The position numbers and the translations under genes were made by a program. Positions 2,247 through 61,030 of a stretch of DNA of 64,000 nt are shown in pieces. The stretch lies in IMG/VR virus record IMGVR_UViG_3300040801_004034, positions 1 to 64,000 of that record. The stretch is one strand, 5' to 3'. How positions within the stretch are numbered: position 1 is the stretch's first letter; every line of letters begins with the position of its first letter. The notes below the pieces were generated by a model. It was not told where the DNA came from, ran no database searches, and saw only the letters and a list, made by a program, of their open reading frames with translations.

Positions 2247-2250
2247 TCAA

Positions 2251-2278: not shown

Positions 2279-2296
2279 TCTTAAATATTATAAACA

Positions 2297-3831: not shown

Positions 3832-4544
3832 TAGATTTGTTCTTTAAGTGTTATGATTTCATTGTTAAGACGTTTTACCTCTTCAATAAGAACTGGTATA
3901 ATTTTTATATAGTCAACAGCAAGATAGCCATTATCACGTTCATGTACAGCTTGCGGGAATACTTTCTGTAACTCCTGTGCCACTACACCAGCTCCTATTT
4001 GATCCACGTATTCTGATTTTTCATTCCATGTGTATATGTAACCGTTTATACCTTCGATAATTTTTTGACTCTCAATAGGTTGTATATTATTTTTAAGTCT
4101 ACCATCTGAAGTATAGAATGCAACAATATCATTACATGAACGTATAGGACCAGTAGCAGTAATACTACCTGATGTCACAATGTTACCAGTATTGGTTATA
4201 GATGAGTTTACTGTTAATGCATTCGCAATTGTTGTTGTTGTCCCAGCTAATGTCGTTGTACCACCTGTTATAGTAACATTAAGCCCGGTTGTAGTAAGAT
4301 TGCTAGAATTAACATTAAATCCGCTCCCTGTAGATAATGATGTACCGATAACAGCTCCATTTGTTGCATTAATATCACCTGTCACGCCTAGACCACCATT
4401 TGGTTGATATATTGTGACTGATGATGAATTACCAAAACCATCTGTCAATAAAATACCACCGCTTGGTATAACTGCGTTATCACAGGTTTTAATAAGCCCG
4501 TGATAACTTTCTTTAATTACTAAATCTGTTAATGCTGTTGCCAT
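3831..4544 (-). CDS. tail fibre-like protein with peptidase S74 chaperone (paralog of 3025..3831)
   Basis: TSDGRLKNNI…GVVAQELQKVFPQAV…VDY…LIEEVK; N-terminus similar to the neighbouring gene. Confidence 0.8.
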   Translation of the reverse strand: MATALTDLVIKESYHGLIKTCDNAVIPSGGILLTDGFGNSSSVTIYQPNGGLGVTGDINATNGAVIGTSLSTGSGFNVNSSNLTTTGLNVTITGGTTTLAGTTTTIANALTVNSSITNTGNIVTSGSITATGPIRSCNDIVAFYTSDGRLKNNIQPIESQKIIEGINGYIYTWNEKSEYVDQIGAGVVAQELQKVFPQAVHERDNGYLAVDYIKIIPVLIEEVKRLNNEIITLKEQI

Positions 4545-4563
4545 AATCTATATTTTTACTTAA

Positions 4564-6438
4564 TCAAAACGATATCTTTCGAGCCTTTGGTATGTTTTCA
4601 TTATTGTAACCTACATCAAGTAAAGCTATAACCTGTTTCTGGTAATTCAACATTGATTCAAACATTCTGTTAAACACTTTTGTTGATGTTGTTTCATTCA
4701 TACCAACGAATAAATTCTTCATAAAACTCTCTGTAACAATTTGTTTATCACCTGCTTTATCAATATATAACAAAGCAAAGAATTCAGGTATTACGTATCT
4801 TCCGTAACTCACATTTACCTTTTTGGATATATTTTGTGTTATCAAATTCATGTTATGTAACATTTTACCCATTGTTTTGTTCAACGTTATGTTATTGAAC
4901 ATATCATCTTGTATCAATACTTCATTTTTAGTGTAAAACGGTAGTGATTTTTCATTAAGAAGGGAGAACTGATCATCTGTTTCATGAAACTGGAGTATAC
5001 GGTTATTGAACATAAATGATATTCTATCGAAATCGTCACCAGTATTTAAAAGTGCCGATGCTTTAAATTGACCAGCTACAGCACTATCAGCTTCCCCCCA
5101 TGTCGGTAATGTATCTCGCCAATCTGTTTCAGTTGTACCCCATACTGTTTCAAGTGCAAAGTTACCACCAATTTTGAAACGAGCAATCAGAATGTTTTTT
5201 CGGTTGAGAAAAAATTTATATAACCCGCTATCTGTTTGAATATAATAAATGTTGCTGTTGTTTTCAGAAAATAGAATATCAACAATAGGTTCGCCTAGGA
5301 ATAAATTATTCTGGAATTTATATCTTTCAACTTCATCCATTGTATCGGTATCAAGCACAACAATAATATTCTGATCTGTTGCAACATATAAATAATTGTT
5401 ATTGATATTGTATGATATTGCTAATACTGTGTTAGTCGTAAAAAATGTCGTGTTTAAATACTTCGATCTATATAATAGTTCACTCGTGAATTTTTTAATC
5501 GATTTCTCACCGCTATCAAAAACAAACACACTACTGTTACCATACTCAATAAATGATATTTGTTCGAAATTCGTATCGTCAATTCCTGTATTACCAATTG
5601 TATCAATCAGTGAAACTGACCTGTCACCTGTTCGATCTTGCGATGTAATATTACCAATATAAATACTATAAAGTTGATTGTTTATTTCATCAGACACATA
5701 TAGTATATCTTTCCGATTTGTAGTAATGGATTTAATACTACTGAACTTGTTAGCATCAAAATTACCAACCCCTGATACAGGCGGGAATGCAGTAATGCTA
5801 TCAAAGTCAGAACCTGTTTCTGCTTGTAACGTTGCATATGATTTATCTGTAACAATAAAAAATATCGAACTTGATACAGACAATATAAATGTTAGAAAAT
5901 CATTATTTCTATTCTGTAATGTTTCAATTTTGATAGTATCTAATGCATCATCTGAAAAAGCTGGATCAAACGAACTTAATGCAAATTGACTACTTGATCC
6001 ATCAATTGCTGGCTCCAAATAGTTATTGTCTGTCCAAACAAGATCTCCATTTAACCCTGATACACCAAGTTGTGCTACAAAACCTACCGGTGCAAGAGGT
6101 GTTATAATCTGTGAATATCTGTATATGTCAATAAAGTTATCATAGAGATTTTCAAGTTTGGTGTTGATTGAGTTTTTATTTATAATTTCATTTGGTTGAA
6201 ATTTCACATCACCAATATCATATTTGAACGAAAACACATCTAACACAGAACGATCAAAGAAAGTTTCAGACAAATTTATCTCATTATCGATAACTTCCGT
6301 CGGTCTTAGAGATATTTCTTGATTGAATCTACCTTGATATGCATTATTATCAAGCACGTTGTAATATCCGACATAGTCACTGCCTGTAAGTACGAACTCA
6401 CCACCGGTTGTGTATTTGTATTTGTAAGGTAATGCCAT
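4564..6438 (-). CDS. virion structural protein with probable beta-propeller
   Basis: 624 aa; LYVSD/VFVFD/LYVAT strand repeats; lies in the baseplate cluster. Confidence 0.55.
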   Translation of the reverse strand: MALPYKYKYTTGGEFVLTGSDYVGYYNVLDNNAYQGRFNQEISLRPTEVIDNEINLSETFFDRSVLDVFSFKYDIGDVKFQPNEIINKNSINTKLENLYDNFIDIYRYSQIITPLAPVGFVAQLGVSGLNGDLVWTDNNYLEPAIDGSSSQFALSSFDPAFSDDALDTIKIETLQNRNNDFLTFILSVSSSIFFIVTDKSYATLQAETGSDFDSITAFPPVSGVGNFDANKFSSIKSITTNRKDILYVSDEINNQLYSIYIGNITSQDRTGDRSVSLIDTIGNTGIDDTNFEQISFIEYGNSSVFVFDSGEKSIKKFTSELLYRSKYLNTTFFTTNTVLAISYNINNNYLYVATDQNIIVVLDTDTMDEVERYKFQNNLFLGEPIVDILFSENNSNIYYIQTDSGLYKFFLNRKNILIARFKIGGNFALETVWGTTETDWRDTLPTWGEADSAVAGQFKASALLNTGDDFDRISFMFNNRILQFHETDDQFSLLNEKSLPFYTKNEVLIQDDMFNNITLNKTMGKMLHNMNLITQNISKKVNVSYGRYVIPEFFALLYIDKAGDKQIVTESFMKNLFVGMNETTSTKVFNRMFESMLNYQKQVIALLDVGYNNENIPKARKISF

Positions 6439-20003: not shown

Positions 20004-21314
20004 ATGCCAACACATACTACAACACAAGATTTAGACACAAACTCACCACAAATCGATGGTGCTACAGCTACAAAAGGTTCATTCGGGGTAGCACCGGATG
20101 GTACACGTTATGTTAAAAATGGGCCAGCTGATACTGATTGGGAGGTTGCTGGTACAGGAAGCGATGGAGATGCTACTAACCTTGATCCCTTATTGTTACG
20201 TCAAGCACAGTTAGCACAAGAATACATTGATGGTCAATATACAACAAGTGAAATTAAAACTATCCCGTTTACACCTTCTGTAGCAGGTGATCCGAATAAT
20301 CAGTTTCGTTGCGGTGTTTATGATATCATTAAAGAGCGTATTATATTTATACCAACAAACGGTGAAAAATTTAATATTATAGATCAAAATACTAACACAA
20401 CCACACAATCTACATTCGGTTTAGATCTTACTACACCTAATTGGATATCTGTTTGCTTAGGAAATGATGGTAAAGCATATGCTACACCTGACGCTGATAA
20501 CATTACCGGATTTCTCATTATTGATTTAGAAAACGATACAGCTACTGAATCAAGATTTGGTTTACCGCTTTCAGCTTTCGAAGAAAATGAATTTGGTAAA
20601 GTACAATGGCTTGGAATTTGCAACGGTGGTAATGGAAAGTTGTATGCAATGCCATTTAACAGTAATTTTGTATGCATTATTGATACAGAAACACAGACTG
20701 CTGAGCTTAAAGATTATGGTCTCGATTTTGTTGGAAATGGATCATATAGAGGTTGTATTACAGGTCTTGATGGTAGAATTTACGGCACACCGCTAAATTC
20801 TACTTCGGTCCTTATTATAGATCCGGTAACTGACACAGCTACGCAAACCGATTTCGGTATTGATATGAACGATCAACAATGGAATTATGCTGGTACTGGT
20901 CCTGATGGTAAAATTTACTGCTTACCATATAGAGCAGAAGGTGTATTAATAATTGATCCAGCTACTGATACAGCAATAGTAAAAGACTATGGTGCTGATT
21001 GGGCGGTAAGACGACCAGCATATAGAGGAGCTTCTACAGGTGTTGACGGTAGAATTTACGGTTTTCCATATAGAGGTATACGTGAAATTGCTATTCTTGA
21101 TCCTGTTGCAGACACACTCGAATTCACAACAGCTGGTATAGATTTTGATAACGGTGGTACTAATGGTAGCTCCCTTCGTTATGATGGTGGCGTTATTGCT
21201 TCAAACGGTAATTTATACCCTGTAATGGCAAAAGGTGAGGTACAACTTGTTATAGAAAATAACTTAATTAAAAGTTTCCCAAGAGCATGGACACCACCAT
21301 ATAATAACAATTAA
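20004..21314 (+). CDS. beta-propeller protein, putative receptor-binding or decoration protein
   Basis: Six to seven repeats of GxDG[KR]IYxxP…ILIIDPxTDTA. Confidence 0.65.
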   Translation: MPTHTTTQDLDTNSPQIDGATATKGSFGVAPDGTRYVKNGPADTDWEVAGTGSDGDATNLDPLLLRQAQLAQEYIDGQYTTSEIKTIPFTPSVAGDPNNQFRCGVYDIIKERIIFIPTNGEKFNIIDQNTNTTTQSTFGLDLTTPNWISVCLGNDGKAYATPDADNITGFLIIDLENDTATESRFGLPLSAFEENEFGKVQWLGICNGGNGKLYAMPFNSNFVCIIDTETQTAELKDYGLDFVGNGSYRGCITGLDGRIYGTPLNSTSVLIIDPVTDTATQTDFGIDMNDQQWNYAGTGPDGKIYCLPYRAEGVLIIDPATDTAIVKDYGADWAVRRPAYRGASTGVDGRIYGFPYRGIREIAILDPVADTLEFTTAGIDFDNGGTNGSSLRYDGGVIASNGNLYPVMAKGEVQLVIENNLIKSFPRAWTPPYNNN

Positions 21315-22045
21315 TATATTTCTTCTAGTTTTACAAAACAAGCAAACGCATTAATTTCTTTGTCCATAACAATTGCATCTTTGTATAAATGCTCACTTAT
21401 ACATAAGATATAACGTTTGCTCTGTTCATCGCTAAGATCTTCACACTTGTAAACATGTTCCAAGTAACCTCTCATCAAGGCATGATAATCACCTTGGAAC
21501 TCGCTGTCATTCTCAATCAAATACTTTCTAAGCTTAAGAGATTTCTTACCTGTAATACATTCATGCATGAATGAGTATATGTTATTGAGATTGGTCAACG
21601 TTTGAATATCTAACTTACCATCAACACAATTTTTCTGTACTTCGTTAATGATCTTACGTATATCTGGAAAGTTATTTTTGATAAGCTTACCAAGCTTTGA
21701 TTTCTGCTCACCACTAACGGTAATACCTTCAGCTGATAAGATATGAGCAACCCTCTTAAGAACATCACCAATATCAGCTGTAAAGTCGAATGACTGTGTT
21801 CTACTCTGAAGGGCTGGAATGATCTTGTGCTTGTAATTAGCTGTAAGTATAAACCTGGTTACCTCACTATACTCTTCAATTGTATTTCGTAGGGCTTTTT
21901 GGCCATCTTTTGAGAGCCCGTCACAATTACTCGTTAATACTTTTTTATTTCCAACAAAGAAATTATGTGTTTCATCAACTGAAAGGTCATAAACTTTCTT
22001 CTTTATACCAATTTTTGTTATTTTTTTAATCTTTAATTTTTGCAT
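21311..22045 (-). CDS. gp44: clamp loader large subunit gp44, C-terminal half preceded by a 40-aa split-intein C fragment
   Basis: VYDLSVDETHNFFVGNKKVLTSN|CDGLSKDGQKALRNTIEEY…FILTAN…ALQSR…FPDIRKIIN. Confidence 0.92.
   Translation of the reverse strand: MQKLKIKKITKIGIKKKVYDLSVDETHNFFVGNKKVLTSNCDGLSKDGQKALRNTIEEYSEVTRFILTANYKHKIIPALQSRTQSFDFTADIGDVLKRVAHILSAEGITVSGEQKSKLGKLIKNNFPDIRKIINEVQKNCVDGKLDIQTLTNLNNIYSFMHECITGKKSLKLRKYLIENDSEFQGDYHALMRGYLEHVYKCEDLSDEQSKRYILCISEHLYKDAIVMDKEINAFACFVKLEEIY
21926..22045 (-). mobile_element. split intein C fragment (40 aa, ends T-S-N; +1 Cys)
   Basis: Intein blocks F/G: VYDLSV…HNF…SN|C. Confidence 0.9.
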
Positions 22046-22970
22046 ATGCCTTTCTCATCATTTTAAGTTGTAATAAATTATCATCTTCAAATTTTGTTTC
22101 GTCAATATATTGTATAATATTTTCTTCATTAATCCATTTAAATGACATTTCATTCTGATCACAATATTCTTGCAATGCTGTCATTTTGTCTATTTCTATA
22201 TTATATCTATTTTTCGGTTTAATTTCATACATTGTACGGGTTTCCGGATCATAAAAATCTGAAATGTATGTTTTGACATCTGTTTTGACTCGTATCGTTT
22301 CATACTCACAATGTTGGTTACATAACCAAAAGCATGCTTCCCACGAACTTCTAAATTTTTTAGTTGTTTCCCCAATTACTATTTTTGCATCCCAGTGTGT
22401 CCATGTATTAGTAATGTTTGGTGTGTATTCACCTGATGCGATTTTCCGTTTCATGGTTCGTGACATTTTCTTTGAACACATCTTTTTATGTTGTTTACCT
22501 TCTTCAGTTTCGTAGAATTTTTTCATACGTTTTGATTTTTTATTCCGCTGAGCTATACCTGCATCTGTCTTATTATATTGTTTAAGTGTTTTACGTATTT
22601 TTTCTATTTCAGATTCAGTTTTTGTGTAATCTCTTAGTTTTGTCCACACACGTTGTTTAATTTCTGATGGCGTATATTTTTTCCAACCGGTCCAACCTTT
22701 AAATGTTCCTGAATAAGAAAAACTATCTTCTGTTAACAAAATTCCAGAATATAAGCTATAGTGCGGTTCTTCGAGTAAAAACAAAAAATGATTAACACTG
22801 GGTTTATCCATCCAGTATACCAAGTTAGTAAACCACAACTTATGTGTATCATATACCTTTTTTGTTACAGGATTATAATAACGTACCTGTTTTTGTTTAT
22901 AATCTTGTACCAAATGTTTTATTGACTCTTTTGAATATGATTTTCTATTCGTTCGATTGCCACCTCTCAT
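22026..22970 (-). mobile_element. free-standing homing endonuclease (NUMOD3-like repeats plus TnsA-like PD-(D/E)XK domain) between the gp44 halves
   Basis: FRSSWE…YE…YISDFY…YEIKP; start placed at ATG 22970, 5 nt after TAAATA. Confidence 0.8.
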
Positions 22971-22974
22971 ATAA

Positions 22975-23316
22975 TTATTTATGACATTCAACAGTAATAC
23001 TATCAACCTTTGTTAAAATTGTATCTATTCCTTTTGAGATCATATCATCTAATTTCATCCTTTCAATCTCACCGTCTTCATTTTCAACATACCATTTATG
23101 ACTACCAGTACATATTATTTTTTCATCATTTTCAAATTCAAGTTCGTAACAATCTTGTTCACCCATGTAAAAATGGCTAAATGGTCTATACTCTATTCTG
23201 TCTTTTATTTGATTATATGACATTACAAGATCATTATCATGATCAAGATCTTTAATAGGTTGAGTACATTTTTTACCATCTCTCAATACATGGACTGGTG
23301 TATTCTCATCAAGACA
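22975..23316 (-). mobile_element. split intein N fragment (113 aa)
   Basis: Block A CLDENT and block B CTGSHKW, followed by a stop codon. Confidence 0.9.
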
Positions 23317-23625
23317 TTCATCAAGCACAATGATCTTCAAATTTTTATCAAACGATTTCGTCTGTGCAAATCCTACAACTTTACTTCTGATAGTATCAAT
23401 ACCGTTTTCGTCAGATGCATTGATATACATATAATCACATTGCAACTTACTAATGATGATTTTCGCAAGCGTTGTTTTACCAATACCTGGTGTACCACAA
23501 AATAACATATGCGGTATTTCAGATGTTATATTTTCAAAATACTTACGATTTTGATTTGACAACACTAAGTCGTCTAATGTTTGAGGTCTGTAACGTTCTG
23601 TCCACAATTGATTAAATTTATCCAT
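22975..23625 (-). CDS. gp44: clamp loader large subunit gp44, N-terminal half followed by a 113-aa split-intein N fragment
   Basis: WTERYRP, GTPGIGKTT, INASDENGID, IIVLDE|CLDENT…IICTGSHKW. Confidence 0.92.
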   Translation of the reverse strand: MDKFNQLWTERYRPQTLDDLVLSNQNRKYFENITSEIPHMLFCGTPGIGKTTLAKIIISKLQCDYMYINASDENGIDTIRSKVVGFAQTKSFDKNLKIIVLDECLDENTPVHVLRDGKKCTQPIKDLDHDNDLVMSYNQIKDRIEYRPFSHFYMGEQDCYELEFENDEKIICTGSHKWYVENEDGEIERMKLDDMISKGIDTILTKVDSITVECHK

Positions 23626-34825: not shown

Positions 34826-37219
34826 TTATGATGTACCGTTTATGATTTCATCAAAATTAGCACCTGTCTGGGTTGCCAAGAAGTTGACTAAGATAAATTC
34901 AGCTGCTCGAACTGGCTTGATATAAATATCAATCACTAGTTCATTCTGATCAATAACATCATTTGTGTTGTTACGTTCATCACAAATGATTCGGTAATCG
35001 TAAACACCTTCAGTATTCTTAGTAAGTTTGAAGATTGGATCAAGTACGTTGACAACTCGTGTTCGTGTAATCAATGTATTCGGTTCGAACACAAAGTACT
35101 TAGCTGTACGTCTTGTTGCCTTTTCTAACCATAAGAATAATCTACGAACATTAATTCTATCAAATGCACTTGGTTTTGCTTGCATTGTCTTCTGACCGAA
35201 TGTTACAAAACCTTCTCCTGGGAAGAATGCAACCGGGTTAACAGAAATTTTGTATAACTGATCACGTTGCTTCTGTTTAGGGTAGATTGCTAGATCATTA
35301 ACACCTGAAACTAGACCTCTTGTGAAACCTGCTGGTGCATACCAAGGCTGGAAGTTATCATCTGTGTTAGCCATCATAGCTGCCATTGTACCTGACATCG
35401 GTGCCCAGAACTGATCGTCTAGAACACTGTCATAAACCTTACCCCAGTTACCATATGTAGCTGCATAGCTTGTGTTAATTAAACTCATTACAGCTTGGAT
35501 TGGTTTAAGAACGTTTAATGAGAAGTTCTTTGATTTATCTTCAAGAGTCAAGAAATTGCTTCCTTGAACGAAGAACTGTCTTGGAAGATCACCAATGAAC
35601 ATATGATCTTTACGACGTTTTTCAGCAAAATCTGAGAAGCGTTGAAAGATCGTATTGTAATCTGCTCTGAAGGCTTTAGCTTCGTTTGAAATCTCAAGAA
35701 TATTAGATTTGTAGAACCCATCAATAGCACCAACTGCCATTGTATCGTCGAAATATTTCGTACCTGTTGTACGCTCTGTATATTCTGCTGTCGCGTTAAT
35801 AGTGGTAAGACCACCATCAACAGTGAGATCGATATCAAACATATCAATGTTTTCAACACTATCGAATAATCTATCAAGCTTGCGTGGAATAGAACCGAGT
35901 TTCTTTGTCTTAGGATTTGCTTCAGCATATGCACCGAGAGCATAGAGATTATCTGCTGCACCTAATGTTGCTGTTGCTTCAATATAAACATCCTTGATTG
36001 TCTCAGCTTGAGCTGATGTTGTTGCACCTAATGAACTGCTCAATGATACGATATTTGTATTAGCTGCAGATACATTAGCGAAACGAGATGATGTGAAACG
36101 CACCTTCTTCGTTGGCACTCCATTAATATCTAACCATGTGCTACCATTTTTGCTATTAACATATTCATTTGTCATCACAACAACATTCGGTGATGCATTT
36201 TCTCGTGTTTCAATTGAATAGCTGATTGCTGGACCACCATTTTGGTTGTTGATTTGTCTATGTGTATCAAATGAACCAACATATGTTTCTGAAATATTGT
36301 ATGCAAGCTTAATTGTATCAGAGGTGAATGGTGATTGGCTTAATTTAACAACACCGAGCGTTACTGTATCATCAAACTGATTCGATGAAATATCAAACAG
36401 GCTCACATTCTCCATAACTTCAGATATGCTATCATCACTTGAATCAAATGTATTAACTGTTGTTGCAGTATTATCAGAGATTGCTGATAGTGCGAAGTCA
36501 AGTCTTGAACTTGGAAGTGATGTGTATGCTGTTGTAAAGCCTGCTGATTGTGTAACAGTCTTAACACTGAGAATACCATCGAAATCTGTCGCAGGGTTTA
36601 GATTTGTGTTATCAATAGCACCAATATAAAAACCTTGAAACTTCTGATCAATTGTAGTCTGCCCTTTGTTAAGTACAATCATTGCTGCACCGCTTAAGTC
36701 TTGAACGCTATTGAATGATGTTTTCGGTGTATTTCCCCACTGGAAGTATTGAGGATTTTTACCAAGAATACCATAATATTCATCACGTGTAAGTTCAACG
36801 TGTGTTGGTTCACCAAGAATGTATGTCACATCTGTTGATTGTTCATCATACTCAGTAAGTGCTGTACCGAAGTTACTTGATAGTGTACTAACCGCACTAC
36901 ATGGATATGCAAGAGCACCATAATTGCTACCAAAACCAGCTCCTGTATCTTCACCGTATGGTAAGCGATATGTTAAAATATTTGCTGGTGAGTTGAAAAG
37001 TGGTCGAACTGAGTGATAAAAATATCTTTCAGCTGGTGTAGATGGTCTACCGTAAATTTGTTCAAATTCACTCTGGCTTGTAACTTGTATAACCTCATCA
37101 GTTGGCCCTTTAGATGCGAAACCTGGGATTAAAACGTTGGTGCCTGTTGGTAGATTTGCTCTAAGGGATAAATCAATCTCTCTCACCTCGACTCCGGGGC
37201 TCTGTATTTGTCTGCTCAT
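34826..37219 (-). CDS. gp18: tail sheath protein gp18
   Basis: SPGVEVREIDL, PWYAPAGFTRG, SAFDRINVRRLF, FEPN, CDERNN, IKPVRAAEFI. Confidence 0.97.
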   Translation of the reverse strand: MSRQIQSPGVEVREIDLSLRANLPTGTNVLIPGFASKGPTDEVIQVTSQSEFEQIYGRPSTPAERYFYHSVRPLFNSPANILTYRLPYGEDTGAGFGSNYGALAYPCSAVSTLSSNFGTALTEYDEQSTDVTYILGEPTHVELTRDEYYGILGKNPQYFQWGNTPKTSFNSVQDLSGAAMIVLNKGQTTIDQKFQGFYIGAIDNTNLNPATDFDGILSVKTVTQSAGFTTAYTSLPSSRLDFALSAISDNTATTVNTFDSSDDSISEVMENVSLFDISSNQFDDTVTLGVVKLSQSPFTSDTIKLAYNISETYVGSFDTHRQINNQNGGPAISYSIETRENASPNVVVMTNEYVNSKNGSTWLDINGVPTKKVRFTSSRFANVSAANTNIVSLSSSLGATTSAQAETIKDVYIEATATLGAADNLYALGAYAEANPKTKKLGSIPRKLDRLFDSVENIDMFDIDLTVDGGLTTINATAEYTERTTGTKYFDDTMAVGAIDGFYKSNILEISNEAKAFRADYNTIFQRFSDFAEKRRKDHMFIGDLPRQFFVQGSNFLTLEDKSKNFSLNVLKPIQAVMSLINTSYAATYGNWGKVYDSVLDDQFWAPMSGTMAAMMANTDDNFQPWYAPAGFTRGLVSGVNDLAIYPKQKQRDQLYKISVNPVAFFPGEGFVTFGQKTMQAKPSAFDRINVRRLFLWLEKATRRTAKYFVFEPNTLITRTRVVNVLDPIFKLTKNTEGVYDYRIICDERNNTNDVIDQNELVIDIYIKPVRAAEFILVNFLATQTGANFDEIINGTS

Positions 37220-37274
37220 ATACTATTATTTATATATTGCGGGATATTTTATTAGTACATGCTTAAATAATTTT

Positions 37275-38054
37275 ATGACACCAGGTAACGAAATTAACGA
37301 CATACCATATTATGGGTATATTTATATGTGGACGGATATTAAACGACAAATGTTCTATATAGGTTCTCATAAAGGCAGCTTTTATGATAGTTATAAAGCT
37401 AGCAATACAAGATTAAAACATGCTATTAGAAAGAGACCAGATACATTCACTGTAAGAGTTATAGAATATGTATGTTGTAATGACCGTCATGAGCTTCATA
37501 AGGTTGAAGAAAAATGGCTTAAATTTTATAATGTCGATGCAAATTATGCTTTCTATAATCATAAAAAAACAGCAAGTGGTGGATCAGGACCATCATCAAG
37601 AAAAGGTTTAACACATAAACAATTTTACGGTGATGATTACATCGATCCAAGAAAGGGTAAAACATTAGAACAAATTTATGGTGATGAAGCTACTGTTGTA
37701 AGGAACCGTTTATCTAAAACATTGCAAGATTATTATATCAAACATGGGCATGGTATCAAAAAAGGCATAACACATGACGGTGTTGATCCTCGTAAAGGTA
37801 AAACATTAGAAGAAATTTATGGTTACAAAAAATATGCAAATCCTCCTAAACCATTTAAGATCATGATATCAATACCTGGTCAGAATAGTGTATATGAAAC
37901 ATTCGAGTCCGAACGAGATTTTTTCAAACGTACATTGTTTGAAGCTACCACACTCGATAAAATTAAAAAAGATAAACGACATACTGTTAAGCGTAGATTA
38001 CCATCAACGAAACATAAATACCCTGTCGGTACTACGTTTTTGTTGTATCCTTAA
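37275..38054 (+). mobile_element. GIY-YIG (Seg-like) free-standing homing endonuclease
   Basis: GYIY…FYIGSH…R…E…FYN; two DPRKGKTLE[Q/E]IYG repeats; start 5 nt after TAAATA; antisense to its neighbours. Confidence 0.85.
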
Positions 38055-38674
38055 ATTAGTTCAATATATAGCTGCGAAAATGCAAACTCAAAAGATGAAT
38101 ACAATTCCGCAGAGTCGTCGTTATCATATGTGTATTCAATTGCACCAACAGATACAGGGAATGCATCTTTGTAAATAAATTTTACAACATTCTTATTATA
38201 TTCATCAATACCATAAACTGTAAATGTCGTCTGGTATTGTTGCGGTGGTGTTGCAGATCGTTTAATTTTACCAACCGTCGGTTTTTGTACGTTTGCAACA
38301 TTATCAGCATCATATACAGAATCTTTCATATCATTCAACAATGATAGCCATCTTTGTAACAACCAATAATTATAATATCTATTATCAACAGGAAATTGTA
38401 CAGTCACATTTTCGTACGGCTCTCTTGTATGTAATGATACCTTCATACTCTGACCAGCATATTTTAAAGTTTCAGAATTTACTTTTGTACTTGGCACTAT
38501 CGTACCCTTAATTGATAGCTGTAGCGAATCAGTTATAATTTCACCTTTATCACTCGTACCAAAATTTTTAGTATTGATATCTCTTAAAGCATCTGGTATA
38601 TCGATAACAAGTCTAAACTTGTCTGTACGTGCTTGGTTAAGCGTTGATTGAATTATCTCCCCCATTGTGTCCAC
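38051..38674 (-). CDS. tail tube terminator/completion protein (gp3-like, tube fold)
   Basis: VQFPVDNRYYNYWLLQRW…FIYKDAFPVSVGAIEY. Confidence 0.6.
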   Translation of the reverse strand: MDTMGEIIQSTLNQARTDKFRLVIDIPDALRDINTKNFGTSDKGEIITDSLQLSIKGTIVPSTKVNSETLKYAGQSMKVSLHTREPYENVTVQFPVDNRYYNYWLLQRWLSLLNDMKDSVYDADNVANVQKPTVGKIKRSATPPQQYQTTFTVYGIDEYNKNVVKFIYKDAFPVSVGAIEYTYDNDDSAELYSSFEFAFSQLYIELI

Positions 38675-39858
38675 CCTTGTTGTTCTAACATTGCCATATC
38701 ATCATCTTGCGACATACCATTATTTATAAGAGCTGGCATCACATCATAATGTTCTTCATTTTCATTACTCATATAACCACCTGGTCTCATAAACTCTTTG
38801 ATACCATAATCATGCTCTTCAAGTAGAAGTGGTTTGTTTGCCTCGTCTCTCTCAACCACTGTAAAATATTGTTCAATCACATCATCTATAAGAATGATTA
38901 AATTCCACATCAATCCAGCAACACGGTCATCGTAAAATCCTGATTTAGCTTGCCATTTCCCGTTCTTACCCTTTGTGAATGTTTTAAGTTCATTGATTAA
39001 ATGAATGTCACGGATACTTACAGCACGTACATTAGTGACCCAATGTCTCATGTTTGTTACACCAATATGTTTTGTGTTAGTATGACTAATTATACCATTT
39101 TGTATTGATTTACGTTTTGCTTTACTGGCGCCCCACGATACTATTTTTTCATAGTTGTGAACATTTTTAAGACCATCAACGACCTGTGCACCACTATTAT
39201 TACGTTCGACACAGACTAAAGGCATTCCCCAGTTTTGTAATATCTCATGTACTTTTTCAACAAAATTATACGGTGCTATTTCATTGTTATGATAACAAGC
39301 AACCTGTTTAATTTCTGTAAGATCTGTATAATCAAAAATTTGCACCACACTAGCATCACGCCCTATACCTTCACTTGTATCAACACTTGCAACATAGATT
39401 TTCTCATCACTTGGTTCTTCCCATATCTTATAATGGCCGTTATCATAAACATATTTTGGTTCATATGTGTTCGATTTCAAAAACTCGAACATTTCCTCAT
39501 TAATAGTCTGATCTGATGAATCAATCCACACACAATTATGGCTATACATATCATTTGTATAATATGCTTTAGTACCATCAACATTTACGATATCGTAAAC
39601 AACACGATCACCACATGGGTGTTTCGAAATAACTTTCTGTAAACCACTTAAGGTTTCCACACCTGTACCTAGTAGTATATCGTTAACTCGTTCAAAACCG
39701 TATTCCGTTTTCAACATATGGTCATACGATGCAGTTAGACTATATACACCACAGTTAATTGATATACATGGTTTTGTTTGCTTAGATATACCATAGAATG
39801 TTTTATATCCTTCTTCAGTCAATACTTTCGTATTGTTAATATTTTTAATGAATTCCAT
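38653..39858 (-). CDS. gp17: terminase large subunit gp17, C-terminal nuclease half preceded by a 108-aa split-intein C fragment
   Basis: VYDIVNV…YSHN|CVWIDSS…VDTSEGIGRD…CVERN…ELKTF…YDDRV. Confidence 0.92.
   Translation of the reverse strand: MEFIKNINNTKVLTEEGYKTFYGISKQTKPCISINCGVYSLTASYDHMLKTEYGFERVNDILLGTGVETLSGLQKVISKHPCGDRVVYDIVNVDGTKAYYTNDMYSHNCVWIDSSDQTINEEMFEFLKSNTYEPKYVYDNGHYKIWEEPSDEKIYVASVDTSEGIGRDASVVQIFDYTDLTEIKQVACYHNNEIAPYNFVEKVHEILQNWGMPLVCVERNNSGAQVVDGLKNVHNYEKIVSWGASKAKRKSIQNGIISHTNTKHIGVTNMRHWVTNVRAVSIRDIHLINELKTFTKGKNGKWQAKSGFYDDRVAGLMWNLIILIDDVIEQYFTVVERDEANKPLLLEEHDYGIKEFMRPGGYMSNENEEHYDVMPALINNGMSQDDDMAMLEQQGWTQWGR
39535..39858 (-). mobile_element. atypical split intein C fragment (108 aa, carries block B and blocks F/G)
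   Basis: KVLTEEG, TASYDH, VYD…SHN|C. Confidence 0.88.
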
Positions 39859-40721
39859 CTTTAGTAATATTTAGGTCGTTAATAGGAGTAATACGATCAT
39901 CATATATGATAACGAAATTACAGTTCAGTTCTTCCTGTATATCCTGTTGTCTCATATGGTCCTTTTTCATTTGACCTGGTGTAAGATGATATGGCTCATA
40001 CACCTCAAAAACAGTGTTCGTTTTATGACAATAACCGTCTGGAAAATAAGAGAGTACTCTAAAATTTCTATCTATTTTAATATTTTGATGTTGTTCATAA
40101 TAATCTAATATATCAGATTCTCTGTATCCTTTATTGATGAATGATGTTATACCTCTCTGTCGTTTTATATTTTGACATTTTTTACCATTTTGTTTATATT
40201 GTGAATTCCATGCGACGATGATATTCAAGATAATGTTTCCTCCAATCGTTCCCGTATGTATACATGAAATGTTCTCGTTTGTTTGGCATTATTCTGCACT
40301 TACCGCAGTATGCTTTTTCTTTAAATTGCTGTGTAGCAGCGTCCCATGTAATTTTCGAACCGCATTTACAATAGTATTTTCTCGGTATATCACCACCACA
40401 AAAACCTAATATAAACAAATGCGCAGAAAAACTCTTCGTTTTGAGTTTATCATGATATTCTATACCGTAATGTTGCACGCTTTTGAATAATGAAATATCA
40501 TCCTTTTGCATTTTTCTATTACCAGATTTACCGAGATATTTTTTCCAATTATCATCTTCTGATAGCATACTAATAGTTTTTTGCTTACTATATAATTGTG
40601 CTTGTTCTAATCGGTTTTTTTGTGTTGTATACCAATTTGTTGTTATTTCACTCTGGTTTTCATTTGCTTTCGCACTGTAGTCTTTCGTAAAGTTCTTCGA
40701 TTGTTTGGGTATATTGTTCAT
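39845..40721 (-). pseudogene. homing endonuclease between the terminase halves, broken into two overlapping frames (40194..40721 and 39845..40228)
   Basis: 5' ORF has CKCG…YCGKC zinc motifs; 3' ORF has a Vsr/PD-(D/E)XK-like YFPDGY…EVYEPYH…KD motif; 35-nt overlap. Confidence 0.65.
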
Positions 40722-40761
40722 TTTTATTACTTAATCGAACAAGAGTGTTTCCAGCGCAACA
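40660..40761 (-). mobile_element. atypically short split intein N fragment (33 aa)
   Basis: CCAGNTLVRL…TIEELYERL then stop; block A only. Confidence 0.88.
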
Positions 40762-41562
40762 ACCAAATTCTTGATCAAACGCTTCTTCACTATCCATACT
40801 AGCTTTTGTAAGCTTTACCCATGCATCATCTCTACCAGGTACTTCATTCCAAAGCACCTTATCACATGCCCAACCATTTGTGTTGTTTTCTGCACCAGTG
40901 AAAAGCTTGTAAAATAAGTTGTCAGTACCATTTGCAGTAGATGCTATAAAAATCTTAGATTTCTTAGAAGATGAAATAACAGGGTATACAGATGACCAGA
41001 ACGGCTTCATAATATGTGGTTCAACGAAAGCCATTTCGTCAATAATAAGAGTACCAACTGCTTGACCACGAGCTGCAGTACCTGTTGTTGTCGAAATATT
41101 AATCTGACTACCATTACTCAATTCAACTGATGTCTTACCATAAGCAACAACACCAGGCTTTAACCAGTTTGGCAATTCTTCGTATGCAAGTCTAACACGA
41201 CCGAGAATTTCAATAGCTGTATCCTCTTTATTTGCTACAATAAGAATACGTTGGTCTTTTTGAAAGCAAGCCACCCATAAAGCGTATATTGTAAAGAGTG
41301 TTGTTTTACCAATCTGTCTAGATGCTAATAATATAAAGAAACGATTTTTGACCATCTTCCTAAGAACCCGGTCCTGAAATTTATGAAGCGTGATAGGTTT
41401 TCTACCTTCGTCAACATTAATAATAGTAAAAAACTTTGAGAAAAAATGAATATCATTTTTTGCTTTAATCAGATCACGCATCATCTCTGGTGTATAATCG
41501 TGTTCAGCTCTCGCGGTAGGCAAATTAGGATTATTTTTGTATGACTGTGTATTTTGCGACAT
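40660..41562 (-). CDS. gp17: terminase large subunit gp17, N-terminal ATPase half followed by a 33-aa split-intein N fragment
   Basis: SRQIGKTT, ARG, IIDEMAF, ASTANG, WNEVPGRD, QEFG|CCAGNTLV…. Confidence 0.93.
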   Translation of the reverse strand: MSQNTQSYKNNPNLPTARAEHDYTPEMMRDLIKAKNDIHFFSKFFTIINVDEGRKPITLHKFQDRVLRKMVKNRFFILLASRQIGKTTLFTIYALWVACFQKDQRILIVANKEDTAIEILGRVRLAYEELPNWLKPGVVAYGKTSVELSNGSQINISTTTGTAARGQAVGTLIIDEMAFVEPHIMKPFWSSVYPVISSSKKSKIFIASTANGTDNLFYKLFTGAENNTNGWACDKVLWNEVPGRDDAWVKLTKASMDSEEAFDQEFGCCAGNTLVRLSNKNEQYTQTIEELYERLQCESK

Positions 41563-41569
41563 AGGCGTA

Positions 41570-41579
41570 TAAATATTTA
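41570..41579. promoter_or_regulatory. palindromic TAAATATTTA, a likely bidirectional late promoter
   Basis: Sits in the 18-nt gap between divergent ATGs at 41562 (-) and 41581 (+). Confidence 0.6.
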
Positions 41580-41580
41580 C

Positions 41581-42438
41581 ATGAGCAATACAAATTCACT
41601 AGTTGATATATGGGACAGATACCAAAATGGTGTTATTTCAGAAAAGTTTGTACCACAAAAGGAAACAAAACATGGTACAAAACCTGGTAAGGGACCAAAT
41701 AATCTAAACAGCGATAAAAACAAAGGTATATATAAGCAAGATACAACTGGACCTAATGCACAGGAGGATAGTCTTAAGAAGCCTATTGACCCTAAAAACG
41801 CTAAGGAAGAAGACGAACTTTATGACTCTGATAAGTTTTCTTCAGAAAAATATGACGAAAGTGTTGAAAAAGTAGATAGTGATATGATAAATAATTGTAT
41901 GGCAAAGAAAACACAATTTGATAAACTCTTCGAAATGGTTACTGGCGACGGTGATGATTTTTCAATCGGTAATGAACCAGAAGTTGATATGGAGCTCGAT
42001 GCTCTTGGTATTGACGATGAAGGTGGCGATGGTGATGGTGAAGATGTAACAATCACTATTTCAAGTCAAGCTGTTGAATGCTTACGAGAAATCTTAGCAC
42101 AGATCGACGGTGACGAAGAAGGTGATGATGAATTCGGAGACGAAGATGGTGGTGATGATGAATTCGGTGATGATGAAGATGATAATGAAGATCCATTTGG
42201 TGAAGCTGTTGAATCACAAGATGTACCAGACTCAGCAGGTATGAAACTTCAAGACAAGAACAACAAGGTTAATGCACCGGGTTACAAACAAAGCGGTGGA
42301 AAAGCATCTGGTAAGATCAAGAAATCAGACGATGAAGGTTCTGATGTAAGTGATTCAGATGGTAAGAAAATGCAAGACAAAAACAACAAGGTGAAGTCAA
42401 ATAAGACATCAACAGTTGGTAAGTCACTTTTTGATTAA
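41581..42438 (+). CDS. highly charged late protein (possible prohead core/scaffold)
   Basis: D/E/G-rich tracts; duplicated G[MK]K[LM]QDKNNKV; start 5 nt after TATAAATA. Confidence 0.65.
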   Translation: MSNTNSLVDIWDRYQNGVISEKFVPQKETKHGTKPGKGPNNLNSDKNKGIYKQDTTGPNAQEDSLKKPIDPKNAKEEDELYDSDKFSSEKYDESVEKVDSDMINNCMAKKTQFDKLFEMVTGDGDDFSIGNEPEVDMELDALGIDDEGGDGDGEDVTITISSQAVECLREILAQIDGDEEGDDEFGDEDGGDDEFGDDEDDNEDPFGEAVESQDVPDSAGMKLQDKNNKVNAPGYKQSGGKASGKIKKSDDEGSDVSDSDGKKMQDKNNKVKSNKTSTVGKSLFD

Positions 42439-42460
42439 TCTTTAAGCCATAAACAATTTA

Positions 42461-42494
42461 ATACTCTACATTTCACGATGTAGAGTATTTTTTT
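42461..42494 (+). terminator. intrinsic terminator
   Basis: ATACTCTACAT-TTCACG-ATGTAGAGTAT followed by a T run. Confidence 0.8.
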
Positions 42495-42508
42495 GTATAA
42501 ATATAGTT

Positions 42509-42853
42509 GTGGATAAGTTTGATAAATTTTTCAATGATAGACAATCATCGACATCACTCGGTAATATAAAGCAACCGAACTCACCTGACTACTATAAACG
42601 TCATGAAAACAAACACATGAAAGGTATCGGTAAGGATGTAGCTGATTATGCTAAGAAGAGTGGAAACACATCAGAACGAAAAATAGACAATATTAAAAAA
42701 CGTGGTGGTCAAACTGCATTAGCTCCACAAGATGTACAATATGTTCAAAAGACATATGTCTTGGATCTCCCTCAACTAGGTCAGTCTAAGCAGCTTGGTA
42801 ACACAGGTGTAACTATCACAAACAACAATAACACATATTTCATATCTAAATGA
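42509..42853 (+). CDS. hypothetical late protein
   Basis: GTG start 5 nt after TATAAATA. Confidence 0.65.
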   Translation: MDKFDKFFNDRQSSTSLGNIKQPNSPDYYKRHENKHMKGIGKDVADYAKKSGNTSERKIDNIKKRGGQTALAPQDVQYVQKTYVLDLPQLGQSKQLGNTGVTITNNNNTYFISK

Positions 42854-43635
42854 GTTCAATAGATTTCAACAACTGCTATCCTGGTATGGTTCAAGATGAT
42901 GAGACATGCTTCAGATTTACTGACAAATCGGTACAAGAGAATGAACGTACTATTTATGATAATGCTTGGAGAGAAGAGATAAACAAGTACGGCATTCAAG
43001 TAAACTACTATGTAAATACATTCACTACACTTTCAGCAGATAATATCTATGGTGAACAAACAACACAAGTATTTTCTGAACCGCGTACGATTAAGATCGG
43101 TGCTGAACTTAATGATGATGCTGTGACATTGTCGAGATTTGGATATGAAAGTGATGATCTTATATCTGCTATGATACATATCAAAACGTTCGAAACAGTA
43201 TTCGGATCATTAAGATCTGTCTACAACAAACAGAATAGTTTGATAGAACCTAAAGCAGGTGATGTATTTCAACTCACGGAATATGGAGATGATAGACCGG
43301 GAGGACGTCAAGCAAAATATTTTGAAATTACAGAACGTCTTGATCAGGCAATAGCTGAAATTAACCAGCTTCAAGGACATTTCGTGTTTAGAATCAAAGC
43401 TAAACGTCTTGATTATTCATATGAACCTGGCATTCCATTCAACAGTGTTGTTGATGGTGTTTCTGGTAACCAACAAATTTACGAAGATACATTTACTGGT
43501 AGATTATCTGGTGGTACACATCCAGAAACAGAAGGTAAGAAAGAGAACTACGGTCAATATGACGCTGACAAAAACAGCTTCAATATATTTGATATGGATT
43601 CAGAAGATCGTGGAGACCAATACGGTAGATATTAA
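42850..43635 (+). CDS. gp14: neck protein gp14-like
   Basis: E.I.KYG..V.Y…IYGE…LSRFG…PKAGD…FEIT…YSYE. Confidence 0.75.
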   Translation: MSSIDFNNCYPGMVQDDETCFRFTDKSVQENERTIYDNAWREEINKYGIQVNYYVNTFTTLSADNIYGEQTTQVFSEPRTIKIGAELNDDAVTLSRFGYESDDLISAMIHIKTFETVFGSLRSVYNKQNSLIEPKAGDVFQLTEYGDDRPGGRQAKYFEITERLDQAIAEINQLQGHFVFRIKAKRLDYSYEPGIPFNSVVDGVSGNQQIYEDTFTGRLSGGTHPETEGKKENYGQYDADKNSFNIFDMDSEDRGDQYGRY

Positions 43636-58090: not shown

Positions 58091-58477
58091 TCAACTCATT
58101 CTACCTAGTTCATCCGAAACGTCATCAATATCGTTTCTTCTTGCAGCAAGATTATCATCCTCTTCAATCCAAAGCGTGTCATAATTGATTCTCATTGCAT
58201 TACTACCGAAATTCGGTCCGAATCTATTTTTAACTGAACCTATGTTGATAATACCTAGTTCTTTATCTTCAGGAGATTGAAAAATATTGTAAATAGCATC
58301 ACAAGTAGCAGCAAGACCGTATGATTCACTGATTGTATCAAGCCCTGGTGAATTTTGACCATATCCACTATTATGTGTTAGAATTCCATTTGCAAAAAAT
58401 AAATTATCATCCGATACAGATATATCTACTGTTTCAATTTCACCTATTTCTTGTATTTCTACTATTTCATCAACCAT
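58091..58477 (-). CDS. gp41: replicative helicase gp41, C-terminal part preceded by a 36-aa split-intein C fragment
   Basis: TVDISVSDDNLFFANGILTHN|SGYG…SESYGLAATCD…KNRFG; start placed at ATG 58477. Confidence 0.9.
   Translation of the reverse strand: MVDEIVEIQEIGEIETVDISVSDDNLFFANGILTHNSGYGQNSPGLDTISESYGLAATCDAIYNIFQSPEDKELGIINIGSVKNRFGPNFGSNAMRINYDTLWIEEDDNLAARRNDIDDVSDELGRMS
58370..58477 (-). mobile_element. split intein C fragment (gp41-1-like, 36 aa; +1 Ser)
   Basis: Blocks F/G ending THN|S. Confidence 0.9.
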
Positions 58478-59660
58478 AAAGGTGTTGTTTACATTTTTCA
58501 ATTGTTTCATCAGGTTTTTCATTATAATCTTTCTCCCATATTACCAGAACATCAAATCCTAGATTTTTTATTATAGCTTGTTTTTCTGCATCTTCAATCC
58601 AAATTTGCTCACATGTAAGATCATTATAAGGATTAGGTTTATCAGTGTTACGGTAAATATCAGGGTTACCATGGAATACATCACCATTAAATTCAATAAC
58701 TTTTTTTCTATCAACATTTACATAATCATAAAAGAAGCTTCGTTTTTTATGTTGTTTATGAAATTCTTTGTTTTTGATCGCATAATATGTATTTTCAGTG
58801 TTACTATCAATCAACTCAAATAGTTGTTGTGATATTTTTGAGAAACCAGAGACCCCTATAGCGCTGTGTGTACACCAGTGTAAATATTTTCTTTCACCGA
58901 GTTCAATACCGTATTTACTAATATAAAAATCTTTTGTATTCCTAAATCTGCATAGTTCTATATGTTTTTCATATTTTTCAGCGCCTTCTTTTTCACCATA
59001 CTTCCTTTTAAAAGACTGCAGCGATTTATGATCTTTAGCTTGTTTCATTTTTTTCGGACCATCTATAACACCATATTTTTTAATAAACCCTTCTTTTGAA
59101 CTACCGAAATGTAGTTTCATTATTTTTTCGTTGTATAATATTACACCTTCATCTTCTCCGTATTTTTGTATATAACTCTCTAACGTATGTTTTTTCTTTT
59201 CCTTTTCTCTCATCAATCTGAATCTTTTACGACCATCAGCATCACCGTATTTTTTTACAAATCGTTCAATCGTTTTATTACCTTTATTATTTTCACACTT
59301 TTCAGCAAATTTCTCACGTCCTTTTATTTCCCCATATAATTTAACATAATTATCAATAGTATGTGCTTTTTTATTACACGCTTGTTCATACCGTTTTTTA
59401 CCTTCCTTTTCTCCAAACTTTAATATACAACCTTCTAGTGTTGATGCAGATTTATACATTTTATTATATTTTTCTATCTTTTTAAGACGATCTAGCCACG
59501 GAAACGGTATATCATACTCGCAAAATCTTGCTAACTGAACCATTTGCATGATAGATAGTTTTTCATAAACATCTTCAATAATTTGTATTTGTTTCTGCTG
59601 TTGCAGGTCAGGGGTTTTATTACAATGTTTTTTCCAGTTTTTTGACTTGTAGTATACCAT
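58470..59660 (-). mobile_element. free-standing Vsr/DUF559-like homing endonuclease between the gp41 halves
   Basis: About seven KYGExEG repeats; FYD…VIEFNGDVFHGNP…VLVIWEKDY; ATG 59660 lies 6 nt after TAAATA. Confidence 0.85.
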
Positions 59661-59695
59661 AAACATTATTTATGACTGCTACACAGATTAACATG

Positions 59696-59965
59696 CTATT
59701 TCTCAGTAAAAAGTTTATCACCTACCTCTAAACCAGTATTGATTGATTTTACAAGCTGATTGGATACTGGAAACATATGTTTACCGCTACAAATAATTTC
59801 TTTACCAGACTTTAACTTTATTTTATAACATTTTTGCGTTTCTACAGGATAAACATATCTCACATCAACATATTTTTTTGACCCTAATATTTTATCTCCT
59901 ATTTTTAAATCAACAATGCGTTTATTACCATTTGGTGTTTTCACCACAGTATTGATATCCAAGCA
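59696..59965 (-). mobile_element. split intein N fragment (gp41-1-like, 89 aa)
   Basis: Block A CLDINT.V.TP.G and block B IICSGKHMFP, followed by a stop codon. Confidence 0.9.
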
Positions 59966-61030
59966 TCTGTTAATCTGAGATGCTGTGATTATAGGGCAAC
60001 TAAAAATGTATGACAAGGCTCGAACCTTTTCAGACACACCTTTAATACGTTCATAAAGCTGACTATTTTCATTACCTTTAATCAAATTCAAATAGTCAAG
60101 AACGATTGCATCAAATTTAAACCCTGAACTTTGTACTGATTTTAAATAACCCTGCAATCCTTCTACAGTAACAGTGTTAGGTGGAAATTCTTTTACAACA
60201 ATTGACCCTTGTTTTGGTTGACCTTCTTGCTCATTCATCATGTGCTTGAGTGTTACTGTTTGAGACTTAAGTTCTCGTACAGGTATTTTCGTTAATCCTG
60301 ATACGAGTCGTCTACCATACATCATTTCAGCCATTTCAAATGATATCAGTAGTACGTTTTTACCGGATGCTGCTATATTACATGCAACATTACCAAGAAC
60401 AATACTCTTACCAATATTAGTCTCACCGACGAACATGTATAATGAACGACCATTTTGTAAAAAGCCGCCATCTAAACTATTATTCAACCAATCCCACCCA
60501 GTAGTAATTGTCGGTTCATCGACATTCAAATCATCGATTAAACGATCAATATCTTTAAAGAGATCAAGACCAATATCAGTAGTAAGGTCAACATTACAAC
60601 TCCTCTCGAAACTATCTAAAATATAAGCTGTATCAATATTACCTTGTGAAAAATCCTCTGCAACACTCAACATTGTATTGTAAATTGCACGTTCTTTAAT
60701 AAAACGCTCAGTATTACTTACCAATTCATCTTTATCAAGAACACGATCAAAGTCTTTTACTTCCTTGATTATGTTTTTGAAGTTTTCTTTGAGAGTATCG
60801 TTAACCAAGAACGATTTAATCTCTGTTATGGTCGGTATTTTCTGTCGACGTTCATAGAACGTTTTAATAACAGTAAAAACATTTTTGATATCTTTGTTCT
60901 TAAAATGACTTGGGTCTACAAAAGGTATTACTTGTGTTAAGTATTGCTCATCGAACAGGCATTGATGTATTAAAATCTTCTCAAAAAAATCTGTATCTAG
61001 TCTTTGTTTTTCCATTTGTTTAGAAACCAT
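59696..61030 (-). CDS. gp41: replicative helicase gp41 (DnaB-like), N-terminal part followed by an 89-aa split-intein N fragment
   Basis: TTGW, GETNIGKS, SFEMAE, KEFPP, LDYLNLI, TASQINR|CLDINT…ICSGKHMF. Confidence 0.93.
   Translation of the reverse strand: MVSKQMEKQRLDTDFFEKILIHQCLFDEQYLTQVIPFVDPSHFKNKDIKNVFTVIKTFYERRQKIPTITEIKSFLVNDTLKENFKNIIKEVKDFDRVLDKDELVSNTERFIKERAIYNTMLSVAEDFSQGNIDTAYILDSFERSCNVDLTTDIGLDLFKDIDRLIDDLNVDEPTITTGWDWLNNSLDGGFLQNGRSLYMFVGETNIGKSIVLGNVACNIAASGKNVLLISFEMAEMMYGRRLVSGLTKIPVRELKSQTVTLKHMMNEQEGQPKQGSIVVKEFPPNTVTVEGLQGYLKSVQSSGFKFDAIVLDYLNLIKGNENSQLYERIKGVSEKVRALSYIFSCPIITASQINRCLDINTVVKTPNGNKRIVDLKIGDKILGSKKYVDVRYVYPVETQKCYKIKLKSGKEIICSGKHMFPVSNQLVKSINTGLEVGDKLFTEK

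Follow-up and report, generated by a model that had tools for sequence, protein, structure and literature searches.

A fractured large-terminase gene in a T4-like mat phage and its predicted restoration by an atypically split intein

Atypically split inteins whose N-terminal fragment (IntN) is short enough to be synthesized are reagents for N-terminal protein labeling, and few have been characterized: AceL-TerL, GOS-TerL, Cat and VidaL. A 2025 review (PMC11766414) gives AceL-TerL an IntN of 25 residues, a C-terminal fragment (IntC) of 104 residues and the pair Cys1/Cys+1, GOS-TerL fragments of 37 and 115 residues with Ser1/Cys+1, and Cat, the published consensus of the AceL/GOS type, fragments of 30 and 104 residues. 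Fractured genes with Vsr-like endonucleases, which overlap the downstream intein part by 6-69 bp, were described by Dassa et al. in 2009 (PMC2677866). One of these, a gp17-like terminase from Lake Gatun, was 'fractured at an unusual point', with a long C-terminal part that holds all N-terminal motifs but N1 and with a free-standing endonuclease, the same arrangement as in the locus analyzed here (PMC2677866). This locus occupies positions 38653-41562 of IMG/VR virus record IMGVR_UViG_3300040801_004034. The window, by which we mean the whole stretch of DNA that was analyzed, is the first 64 kb of this 221-kb record (complete according to CheckV); it has a G+C content of ~34% and carries T4-like terminase, tail tube and tail sheath genes. 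We found that the large-terminase (TerL) gene of this T4-like phage from a microbial mat is fractured, and that it is very probably restored by trans-splicing of an atypically split intein.

The intein halves and their junction in the terminase

TerL is encoded by two open reading frames (ORFs) on the minus strand that share one reading frame (Table 1). The upstream ORF (TerL-N, 40660-41562) specifies 300 residues, of which residues 6-244 match T4 gp17 at an expectation value (E) of 8e-42. Its residues 268-300 form a 33-residue tail that opens with Cys-Cys, agrees with the block A pattern of relatives (C-x-x-G-N/E/D-T-L-V) and runs into a TGA stop codon. The downstream ORF (TerL-C, 38653-39858) specifies 401 residues, and its residues 1-108 constitute the IntC, which ends in Ser-His-Asn before Cys109. 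A preliminary description, made from the letters of the DNA, had called a terminase with a 33-residue IntN that carries block A only and a 108-residue IntC that carries block B and ends in SHN before a Cys; both fragments hold in position and sequence, and the terminase identity is confirmed by T4 gp17, Terminase_6N, phrog_5989 and phrog_24361. The IntN peptide is too short for sequence searches: by itself against the PDB it retrieved WD40 repeats only, and these were rejected as spurious.

Table 1. Coordinates of the parts of the fractured terminase locus in the window (L006, L012, L015 and L016 are related loci treated in the text)
Feature	Position	Strand	Evidence
TerL N-extein, residues 1-267, ending ...QEFG; T4 gp17-type ATPase domain	40762..41562	-	Pfam Terminase_6N E 2e-14; phrog_5989 E 3e-47; T4 gp17 structures E 8e-42; junction from uninterrupted relatives
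IntN, 33 codons (40663-40761) plus TGA stop; block A only, Cys1-Cys2	40660..40761	-	Block A pattern of relatives; predicted docking on IntC
Endonuclease 5' piece, ORF175; Cys-rich, putative DNA-binding part	40194..40721	-	Aligns to L016 residues 9-168 (49% identity); L015 E 4e-27; L012 E 1e-17
Endonuclease 3' piece, ORF127; Vsr-like / PD-(D/E)xK nuclease domain (putative), other frame, TTG start	39845..40228	-	L016 residues 176-286 (59% identity); weak DUF7487 and DUF559 matches; AlphaFold2 model
IntC, 108 residues; block B (S44, H47), F (D89), G (H107, N108)	39535..39858	-	CatC (6dsl_B) E 9e-5 alone, 1.9e-23 as family profile; AlphaFold2 pLDDT 95.9; Foldseek VidaL, gp41-1, Cat TM 0.78-0.81
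TerL C-extein, Cys+1 then RNase H-like nuclease domain, residues 109-401, plus stop	38653..39534	-	phrog_24361 terminase E 1e-9; tblastn to T4-like TerL genes; 49-56% identity to nuclease domains of L006 and L016

The 108-residue segment is a HINT domain on the combined basis of sequence, fold and conservation. In a phmmer search the IntC by itself matched CatC, the engineered consensus atypical TerL intein, followed by VidaL and gp41-1. A family profile built from a 16-member alignment matched CatC over its full length (positions 1-111), and all 33 of its PDB matches were inteins or intein-like domains. Along with the gp17 match of TerL-N, these similarities lie far outside chance. AlphaFold2, run on the same alignment, gave a model with a high predicted local distance difference test score (pLDDT; Table 1). 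Compared with the PDB by Foldseek, this model matched VidaL with a template modeling (TM) score of 0.81, gp41-1 with 0.78-0.79 and Cat (6dsl_B) with 0.78 at 32% identity, and the top 40 matches were all inteins or BIL/Hedgehog domains. Its best structural matches are thus VidaL (6VGV), which is also atypically split, and gp41-1 (6QAZ); unlike the present intein, both have other hosts and sites, and gp41-1 is broken at the canonical site of endonuclease insertion. Among the 16 family members H47, D89, G17 and V93 do not vary and N108 hardly does, and the class-1 catalytic set is complete (Cys1, S44/H47, D89, H107-N108 and Cys+1). The possibility raised beforehand, that these N-terminal residues might not be a Hint domain, was therefore settled in favor of HINT by profile, model and Foldseek. 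A word-based protein search with residues 1-125 of TerL-C found no match, which marks the limit of its sensitivity, since an exhaustive HMMER search gave 161 relatives.

We found that the two intein halves are predicted to dock. A complex predicted from TerL-N residues 255-300 and TerL-C residues 1-125 reached an interface score (ipSAE) of 0.81, against 0.02 for the best control; in calibration, the mark for docking was attained by 51 of 78 solved complexes and by 2 of 108 mismatched pairs. The runs agreed in at least 87% of their contacts, and the pLDDT of the partners was at least 73. In the predicted complex, IntN residues 273-278 pair as β-strands with IntC residues 10-13 and 99-103. The predicted interface sets residues 266-279 against block B (41-48), S106-H107 and Cys+1 (109), and the same three elements are contacted by the scissile region (266-268).

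The junction could be read from relatives in which TerL is uninterrupted at this site. One of them, L006 (IMGVR_UViG_3300046804_004994, 1435-4885), reads ...FDREFN-CKFLQ... across it, and several others (47-75% identical) read ...FNQEFN-CEFLDSGES... or ...FDQEFG-NVFLQTGES.... Here the exteins read ...FDQEFG and CVWIDSSDQ..., and their summed length equals that of the uninterrupted relatives. Because the joined exteins match in length, the intein is placed from Cys268 of TerL-N through Asn108 of TerL-C; on this alignment Cys1 is the first of the two cysteines, and the +1 nucleophile is Cys109. The insertion point is the ...QE(F/Y)x|C(E/Q/S)F... site of TerL. In T4 gp17 the insertion site aligns between T353 and A354 (3ezk numbering), 7 residues upstream of the N360 end of the crystallized gp17 ATPase construct, a boundary taken from the 2o0h chain, whose 385 residues comprise a 25-residue tag and 360 residues of protein. 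The break does part the ATPase domain from the nuclease domain, as had been proposed.

The AceL-TerL/GOS-TerL architecture that the preliminary description had named was borne out by sequence, profile, fold and predicted docking, with the break between blocks A and B; sequence homology to the AceL/GOS family was assessed through Cat. Like AceL-TerL, GOS-TerL and Cat, the intein resides in a large terminase, is split after block A and combines a short IntN (33 residues) with an IntC in the range of ~104-115 residues (108), and it shares the class-1 Cys1/Cys+1 set with AceL-TerL and Cat. The CatC chain has Cys-Glu right after its mutated terminal Asn, the same start as in the CEF C-exteins that are common at this site; unlike Cat, which is followed by CE, the present intein lies between ...EFG and CVWID. 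It differs from all three in having Cys at position 2 and in its divergent sequence, with at most 45% identity to any of 1.84 billion representative proteins. Together, the locus shows every testable defining feature of the AceL/GOS/Cat family, and trans-splicing is predicted on the strength of sequence and models.

A frameshifted endonuclease gene between the halves

Two ORFs of 175 and 127 residues, which are absent from the preliminary description, lie between the intein halves. The ATG of ORF175 sits 62 nucleotides (nt) inside the TerL-N reading frame, within the IntN codons and stop, and the 3' end of ORF127 overlaps the IntC ATG by 14 nt (39845-39858). Three relatives, L016, L012 and L015, have the same three-gene layout with a single intact endonuclease gene of 292, 280 and 249 residues, respectively. 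In L016, the nearest relative, which is 70% identical to this locus in the N-extein, 55% in IntN, 41% in IntC and 56% in the C-extein, the endonuclease gene overlaps its neighbors likewise, by roughly 65 nt and 14 nt; the 14-nt overlap is also the same size in L012 and L015. In the present copy, a single frameshift near 40205-40225 divides the gene, no homopolymer is found there, and the frameshift appears in every assembly and contig examined. This copy thus no longer encodes the DNA-binding part and the nuclease part as a single intact chain.

The intervening gene appears to be a homing endonuclease of the Vsr-like (EDxHD, DUF559) type treated by Dassa et al. in 2009 and by Taylor et al. in 2011, and the membership of this copy rests largely on its orthologues. 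ORF127 scored 14.1 bits against DUF559 (E 0.04), below the cut-off of 20.6 bits, and matched DUF7487 weakly (E 2e-4). Of the orthologues, L012 scored 21.2 bits against DUF559, above the cut-off, and L015 15.6 bits. The endonuclease profile had no match among PDB sequences. The AlphaFold2 model of ORF127 gave weak fold matches to lambda exonuclease (TM 0.5) and to Vsr (1cw0/1vsr, TM 0.4-0.5), which suggests a restriction-endonuclease-type fold. As in I-Bth0305I and the EDxHD group (PMC3239194), an N-terminal Cys-rich, putative DNA-binding part precedes a C-terminal nuclease of restriction-endonuclease topology; unlike in that group, the similarity is marginal in this copy, the N-terminal part was not NUMOD-like in the scans run, and the gene is broken.

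We also found that the fractured-gene arrangement of Dassa et al. is present here, with an endonuclease gene that is retained though frameshifted. As in their genes, the endonuclease gene runs at its 3' end into the beginning of the downstream intein part, by 14 nt here and by 6-69 bp in theirs, and as in the Lake Gatun terminase, the unusual breakpoint leaves only motif N1 upstream. In contrast to the published cases, the endonuclease is divided into two ORFs, and its start lies inside the IntN codons in place of a 5' untranslated region with a hairpin. A small stem does enclose the ORF175 ATG; its fold was no better than shuffles (z -0.9), and RNA folds around the three internal starts likewise yielded no significant hairpin and none better than shuffles. 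The frameshifted homing-endonuclease gene would explain why the intein is split. Judged from its broken frame, the endonuclease is probably decaying in this phage and may be inactive. A GGAGG lies ten bases ahead of the ORF127 TTG, which might allow continued translation of the nuclease piece.

Relatives of the split intein

In order to place the intein among its relatives, we used IntC in the exhaustive HMMER search of the 1.84 billion representatives, which returned 161 matches at E <=0.001, the best of them 45% identical. A survey of sites covered the 140 full-length matches within the best 150 of the 161. IntC stood at the very start of the protein in 97 of these 140, at least 45 of the 97 were at this same TerL site (C-E/S/Q-F-L-G-S-S), and the remaining IntC-first proteins were at the P-loop or Walker B sites of TerL. 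By these counts the family is found most often at the ATPase/nuclease boundary, and the use of that site here is not special.

The N-terminal side gave a similar picture. Among the 120 proteins closest to TerL-N, ~47 have an IntN as their C-terminal tail at this site, a count that includes the window's own protein and excludes six truncated uninterrupted fragments; at least 25 of the 120 are uninterrupted. The IntNs at this site are 25-41 residues long (median 29), apart from one 60-residue tail of uncertain status. Among the ~47, 24 start with CV, 9 with CC and ~9 with Ser, as in GOS-TerL. The Cys-Cys start, which the preliminary description had singled out, is present yet not distinctive, and like the length of 33 residues it is ordinary among the sequences compared. 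The Ser-start IntNs (S-C-x-G-E-T... or S-T-D-Y-T-T...) are those of P0162-P0167, P0171, P0183 and P0193, and this Ser1/Cys+1 chemistry, which had been described as unusual in GOS-TerL, appears to form a sizeable natural subgroup.

Several relatives carry endonucleases in other arrangements. Cultured phages have the same type of atypically split intein. In Vibrio phage VP-1 (MH363700, 843-4185), IntN at this TerL site continues in frame with a GIY-YIG endonuclease, and a separate contiguous mini-intein occupies the P-loop. In Escherichia phage kaaroe (MN850574, 1257-4368) and other RB49-like coliphages, a TnsA-like nuclease is found at Walker B, fused in frame to IntN in the case of kaaroe. L006, uninterrupted at the site studied here, has an atypically split intein at Walker B in which a DUF559 endonuclease precedes IntC as an in-frame fusion (911-residue ORF), the mirror image of the VP-1 and kaaroe fusions. 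These three arrangements fit the gene-breaking model of 2009 (PMC2677866). Pfam assigns the three endonucleases to different families (GIY-YIG, TnsA-like and DUF559), and blastp of ORF175 against them found no match. GenBank labels the split-intein ORFs of VP-1 and kaaroe merely as terminase or hypothetical protein, and the annotated start of the VP-1 C-terminal half leaves out IntC.

The natural pool is thus large, with 161 cluster representatives, several TerL sites, Cys1 and Ser1 variants and IntNs of 25-41 residues. At <=45% identity to any other IntC, the present one could be orthogonal to the characterized inteins. The locus also offers a snapshot of the homing cycle, in which some relatives lack the intein, others have an intact endonuclease and this phage has a freshly frameshifted one. 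It would be a tidy case of endonuclease decay after fixation and leaves current understanding unchanged.

Predicted restoration of the terminase, alternatives and other elements of the phage

In the mechanism that we favor, a mobile intein would have occupied the ATPase-nuclease linker of TerL, and a free-standing Vsr-like endonuclease gene would have landed between blocks A and B and not at the usual endonuclease site, giving rise to the atypical split. Two polypeptides would then be made, one consisting of the ATPase and the 33-residue IntN and the other of the 108-residue IntC and the nuclease; the 14-nt overlap of the IntC ORF start with the endonuclease 3' end would permit translational coupling. 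The short IntN would thread onto the near-complete IntC and complete the HINT fold, after which the class-1 steps would follow: an N-S acyl shift at Cys1, transesterification to Cys+1, cyclization of Asn108 and an S-N shift. The expected product is a continuous TerL of ~560 residues, joined as ...QEFG-CVWID..., that would act as the packaging motor. The intact endonuclease would once have cut intein-free TerL alleles, copying the whole element into them; it would now be decaying, while selection would maintain the splicing parts, since DNA packaging would fail with an unspliced TerL.

Several points weigh against this account. The nearest relatives share only 41-45% identity with IntC, and activity therefore cannot be assumed. 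The C-extein starts with CVWID and not with C-E/Q-F-L as in relatives, and the -1 residue is Gly, whereas the review, when it covers the Cat study, emphasizes that a Glu of the N-extein contacts IntC (PMC11766414); splicing efficiency could differ for both reasons. Because the Cat complex (6DSL) is already solved, the docking score may be the model's memory of it, and the prediction would demonstrate likeness to a working intein, not binding by this copy. A convincing Shine-Dalgarno sequence was not found upstream of the IntC ATG. The runs that bear the locus are metagenomic, with no RNA run among them, and splicing is a prediction.

A variant of the same account concerns parts of the locus that we have treated as neutral or decaying. 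Cys2, present in about one fifth of the split relatives at this site, might form a reversible disulfide with Cys1 or Cys+1 and so make the maturation of TerL depend on redox state, a plausible control given the oxic/anoxic setting of a microbial mat, or the two endonuclease pieces might act as a two-chain enzyme, which the GGAGG-TTG start of the nuclease piece itself would allow. We consider either of these a long shot.

It is also conceivable that splicing has been lost and that TerL is a two-chain enzyme, held together non-covalently by IntN and IntC or, as the preliminary description had suggested, with halves that act separately. The isolated N domain of T4 gp17 retains ATPase activity and its isolated C domain retains nuclease activity; the break here lies 7 residues before the end of the self-folding N360 ATPase construct, and the predicted IntN-IntC complex is tight. 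However, the gp17 translocation model requires both domains to be joined by a hinge, close intein-free relatives encode one continuous TerL, and the catalytic residues are kept here and in relatives that have diverged to ~41% intein identity, a pattern that points to selection on splicing. Both the conserved catalytic residues and the uninterrupted TerL of relatives that lack the intein speak mildly against separate halves, and we regard a two-chain terminase as unlikely.

The preferred reading, a gene restored by trans-splicing, also has to be weighed against errors of assembly or sequencing, which might have broken a contiguous intein with a nested endonuclease. The endonuclease does occupy two frames, and all DNA support comes from metagenome assemblies: contigs from three runs, all of one microbial-mat sample, carry the locus. 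However, two other IMG/VR records hold the identical sequence, separately assembled contigs span the frameshift with zero differences, and the frameshift is not at a homopolymer. Moreover, ~47 relatives also have a stop codon behind IntN, at least 97 proteins also open with a separately started IntC, and the L016 endonuclease is likewise in another frame and overlaps both neighbors. An artefact is therefore very improbable. Among the contigs of this one mat sample we saw neither variants nor an allele free of the intein nor a repaired endonuclease, and blastn of the locus against GenBank phages gave a sole match of 104 bp. Removal of the interruption from the RNA, for instance as a group I intron, an element that also houses Vsr-like endonucleases (PMC2677866, PMC3239194), is hardly credible, given that Rfam has no family in 37000-43000 even at E 1, that local RNA folds are no better than shuffles and that the two sides of the insert together code for an entire HINT domain, which is in frame with both exteins.

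Other elements were observed near the locus and elsewhere in the phage. A free-standing GIY-YIG homing endonuclease gene (37137-38054, plus strand; phrog_314 E 4e-13) lies on the other strand from the terminase, squeezed in between the tail tube (38051-38674) and tail sheath (34826-37219) genes. A divergent ORF (41554-42438, plus strand) that starts ~20 nt from the TerL-N start encodes a very acidic low-complexity protein with D/E/G runs. The motif TATAAATA occurs at 41568-41575 (plus strand); in a scan, sigma-70 promoters, terminators and this T4 late-promoter motif were not above chance near the genes.

A second fractured gene (21311-23625, minus strand) encodes a clamp-loader-like AAA+ protein, identified by eye. 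Its first ORF (22975-23625) ends in an IntN of canonical length after the junction ...LDE|C, the middle one (22026-23006, 326 residues) has weak TnsA-like and restriction-endonuclease matches, and the last (21311-22045) opens with a short IntC that ends ...TSN before a Cys; pieces of PF14890 match at 21944-23286. A third (58091-61030, minus strand) encodes a gp41/DnaB-type helicase with a canonical split and resembles the gp41-1 type loci of Dassa et al. Here, an ORF that ends with an IntN after the junction ...QINR|C (59696-61030) is followed by a 398-residue Vsr-like endonuclease ORF with weak DUF559/MTES_1575 matches (58470-59666) and by an ORF that opens with an IntC ending ...THN before a Ser (58091-58522). 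Outside the window, a 1075-residue ORF with ribonucleotide-reductase domains (L019:674-3898; G000:C1:116673-119897, plus strand) contains an internal intein-like insertion, which matches PF14890 (E 3e-4) and the IntC family profile. This appears to be a contiguous intein, and with it the phage would carry at least four inteins.

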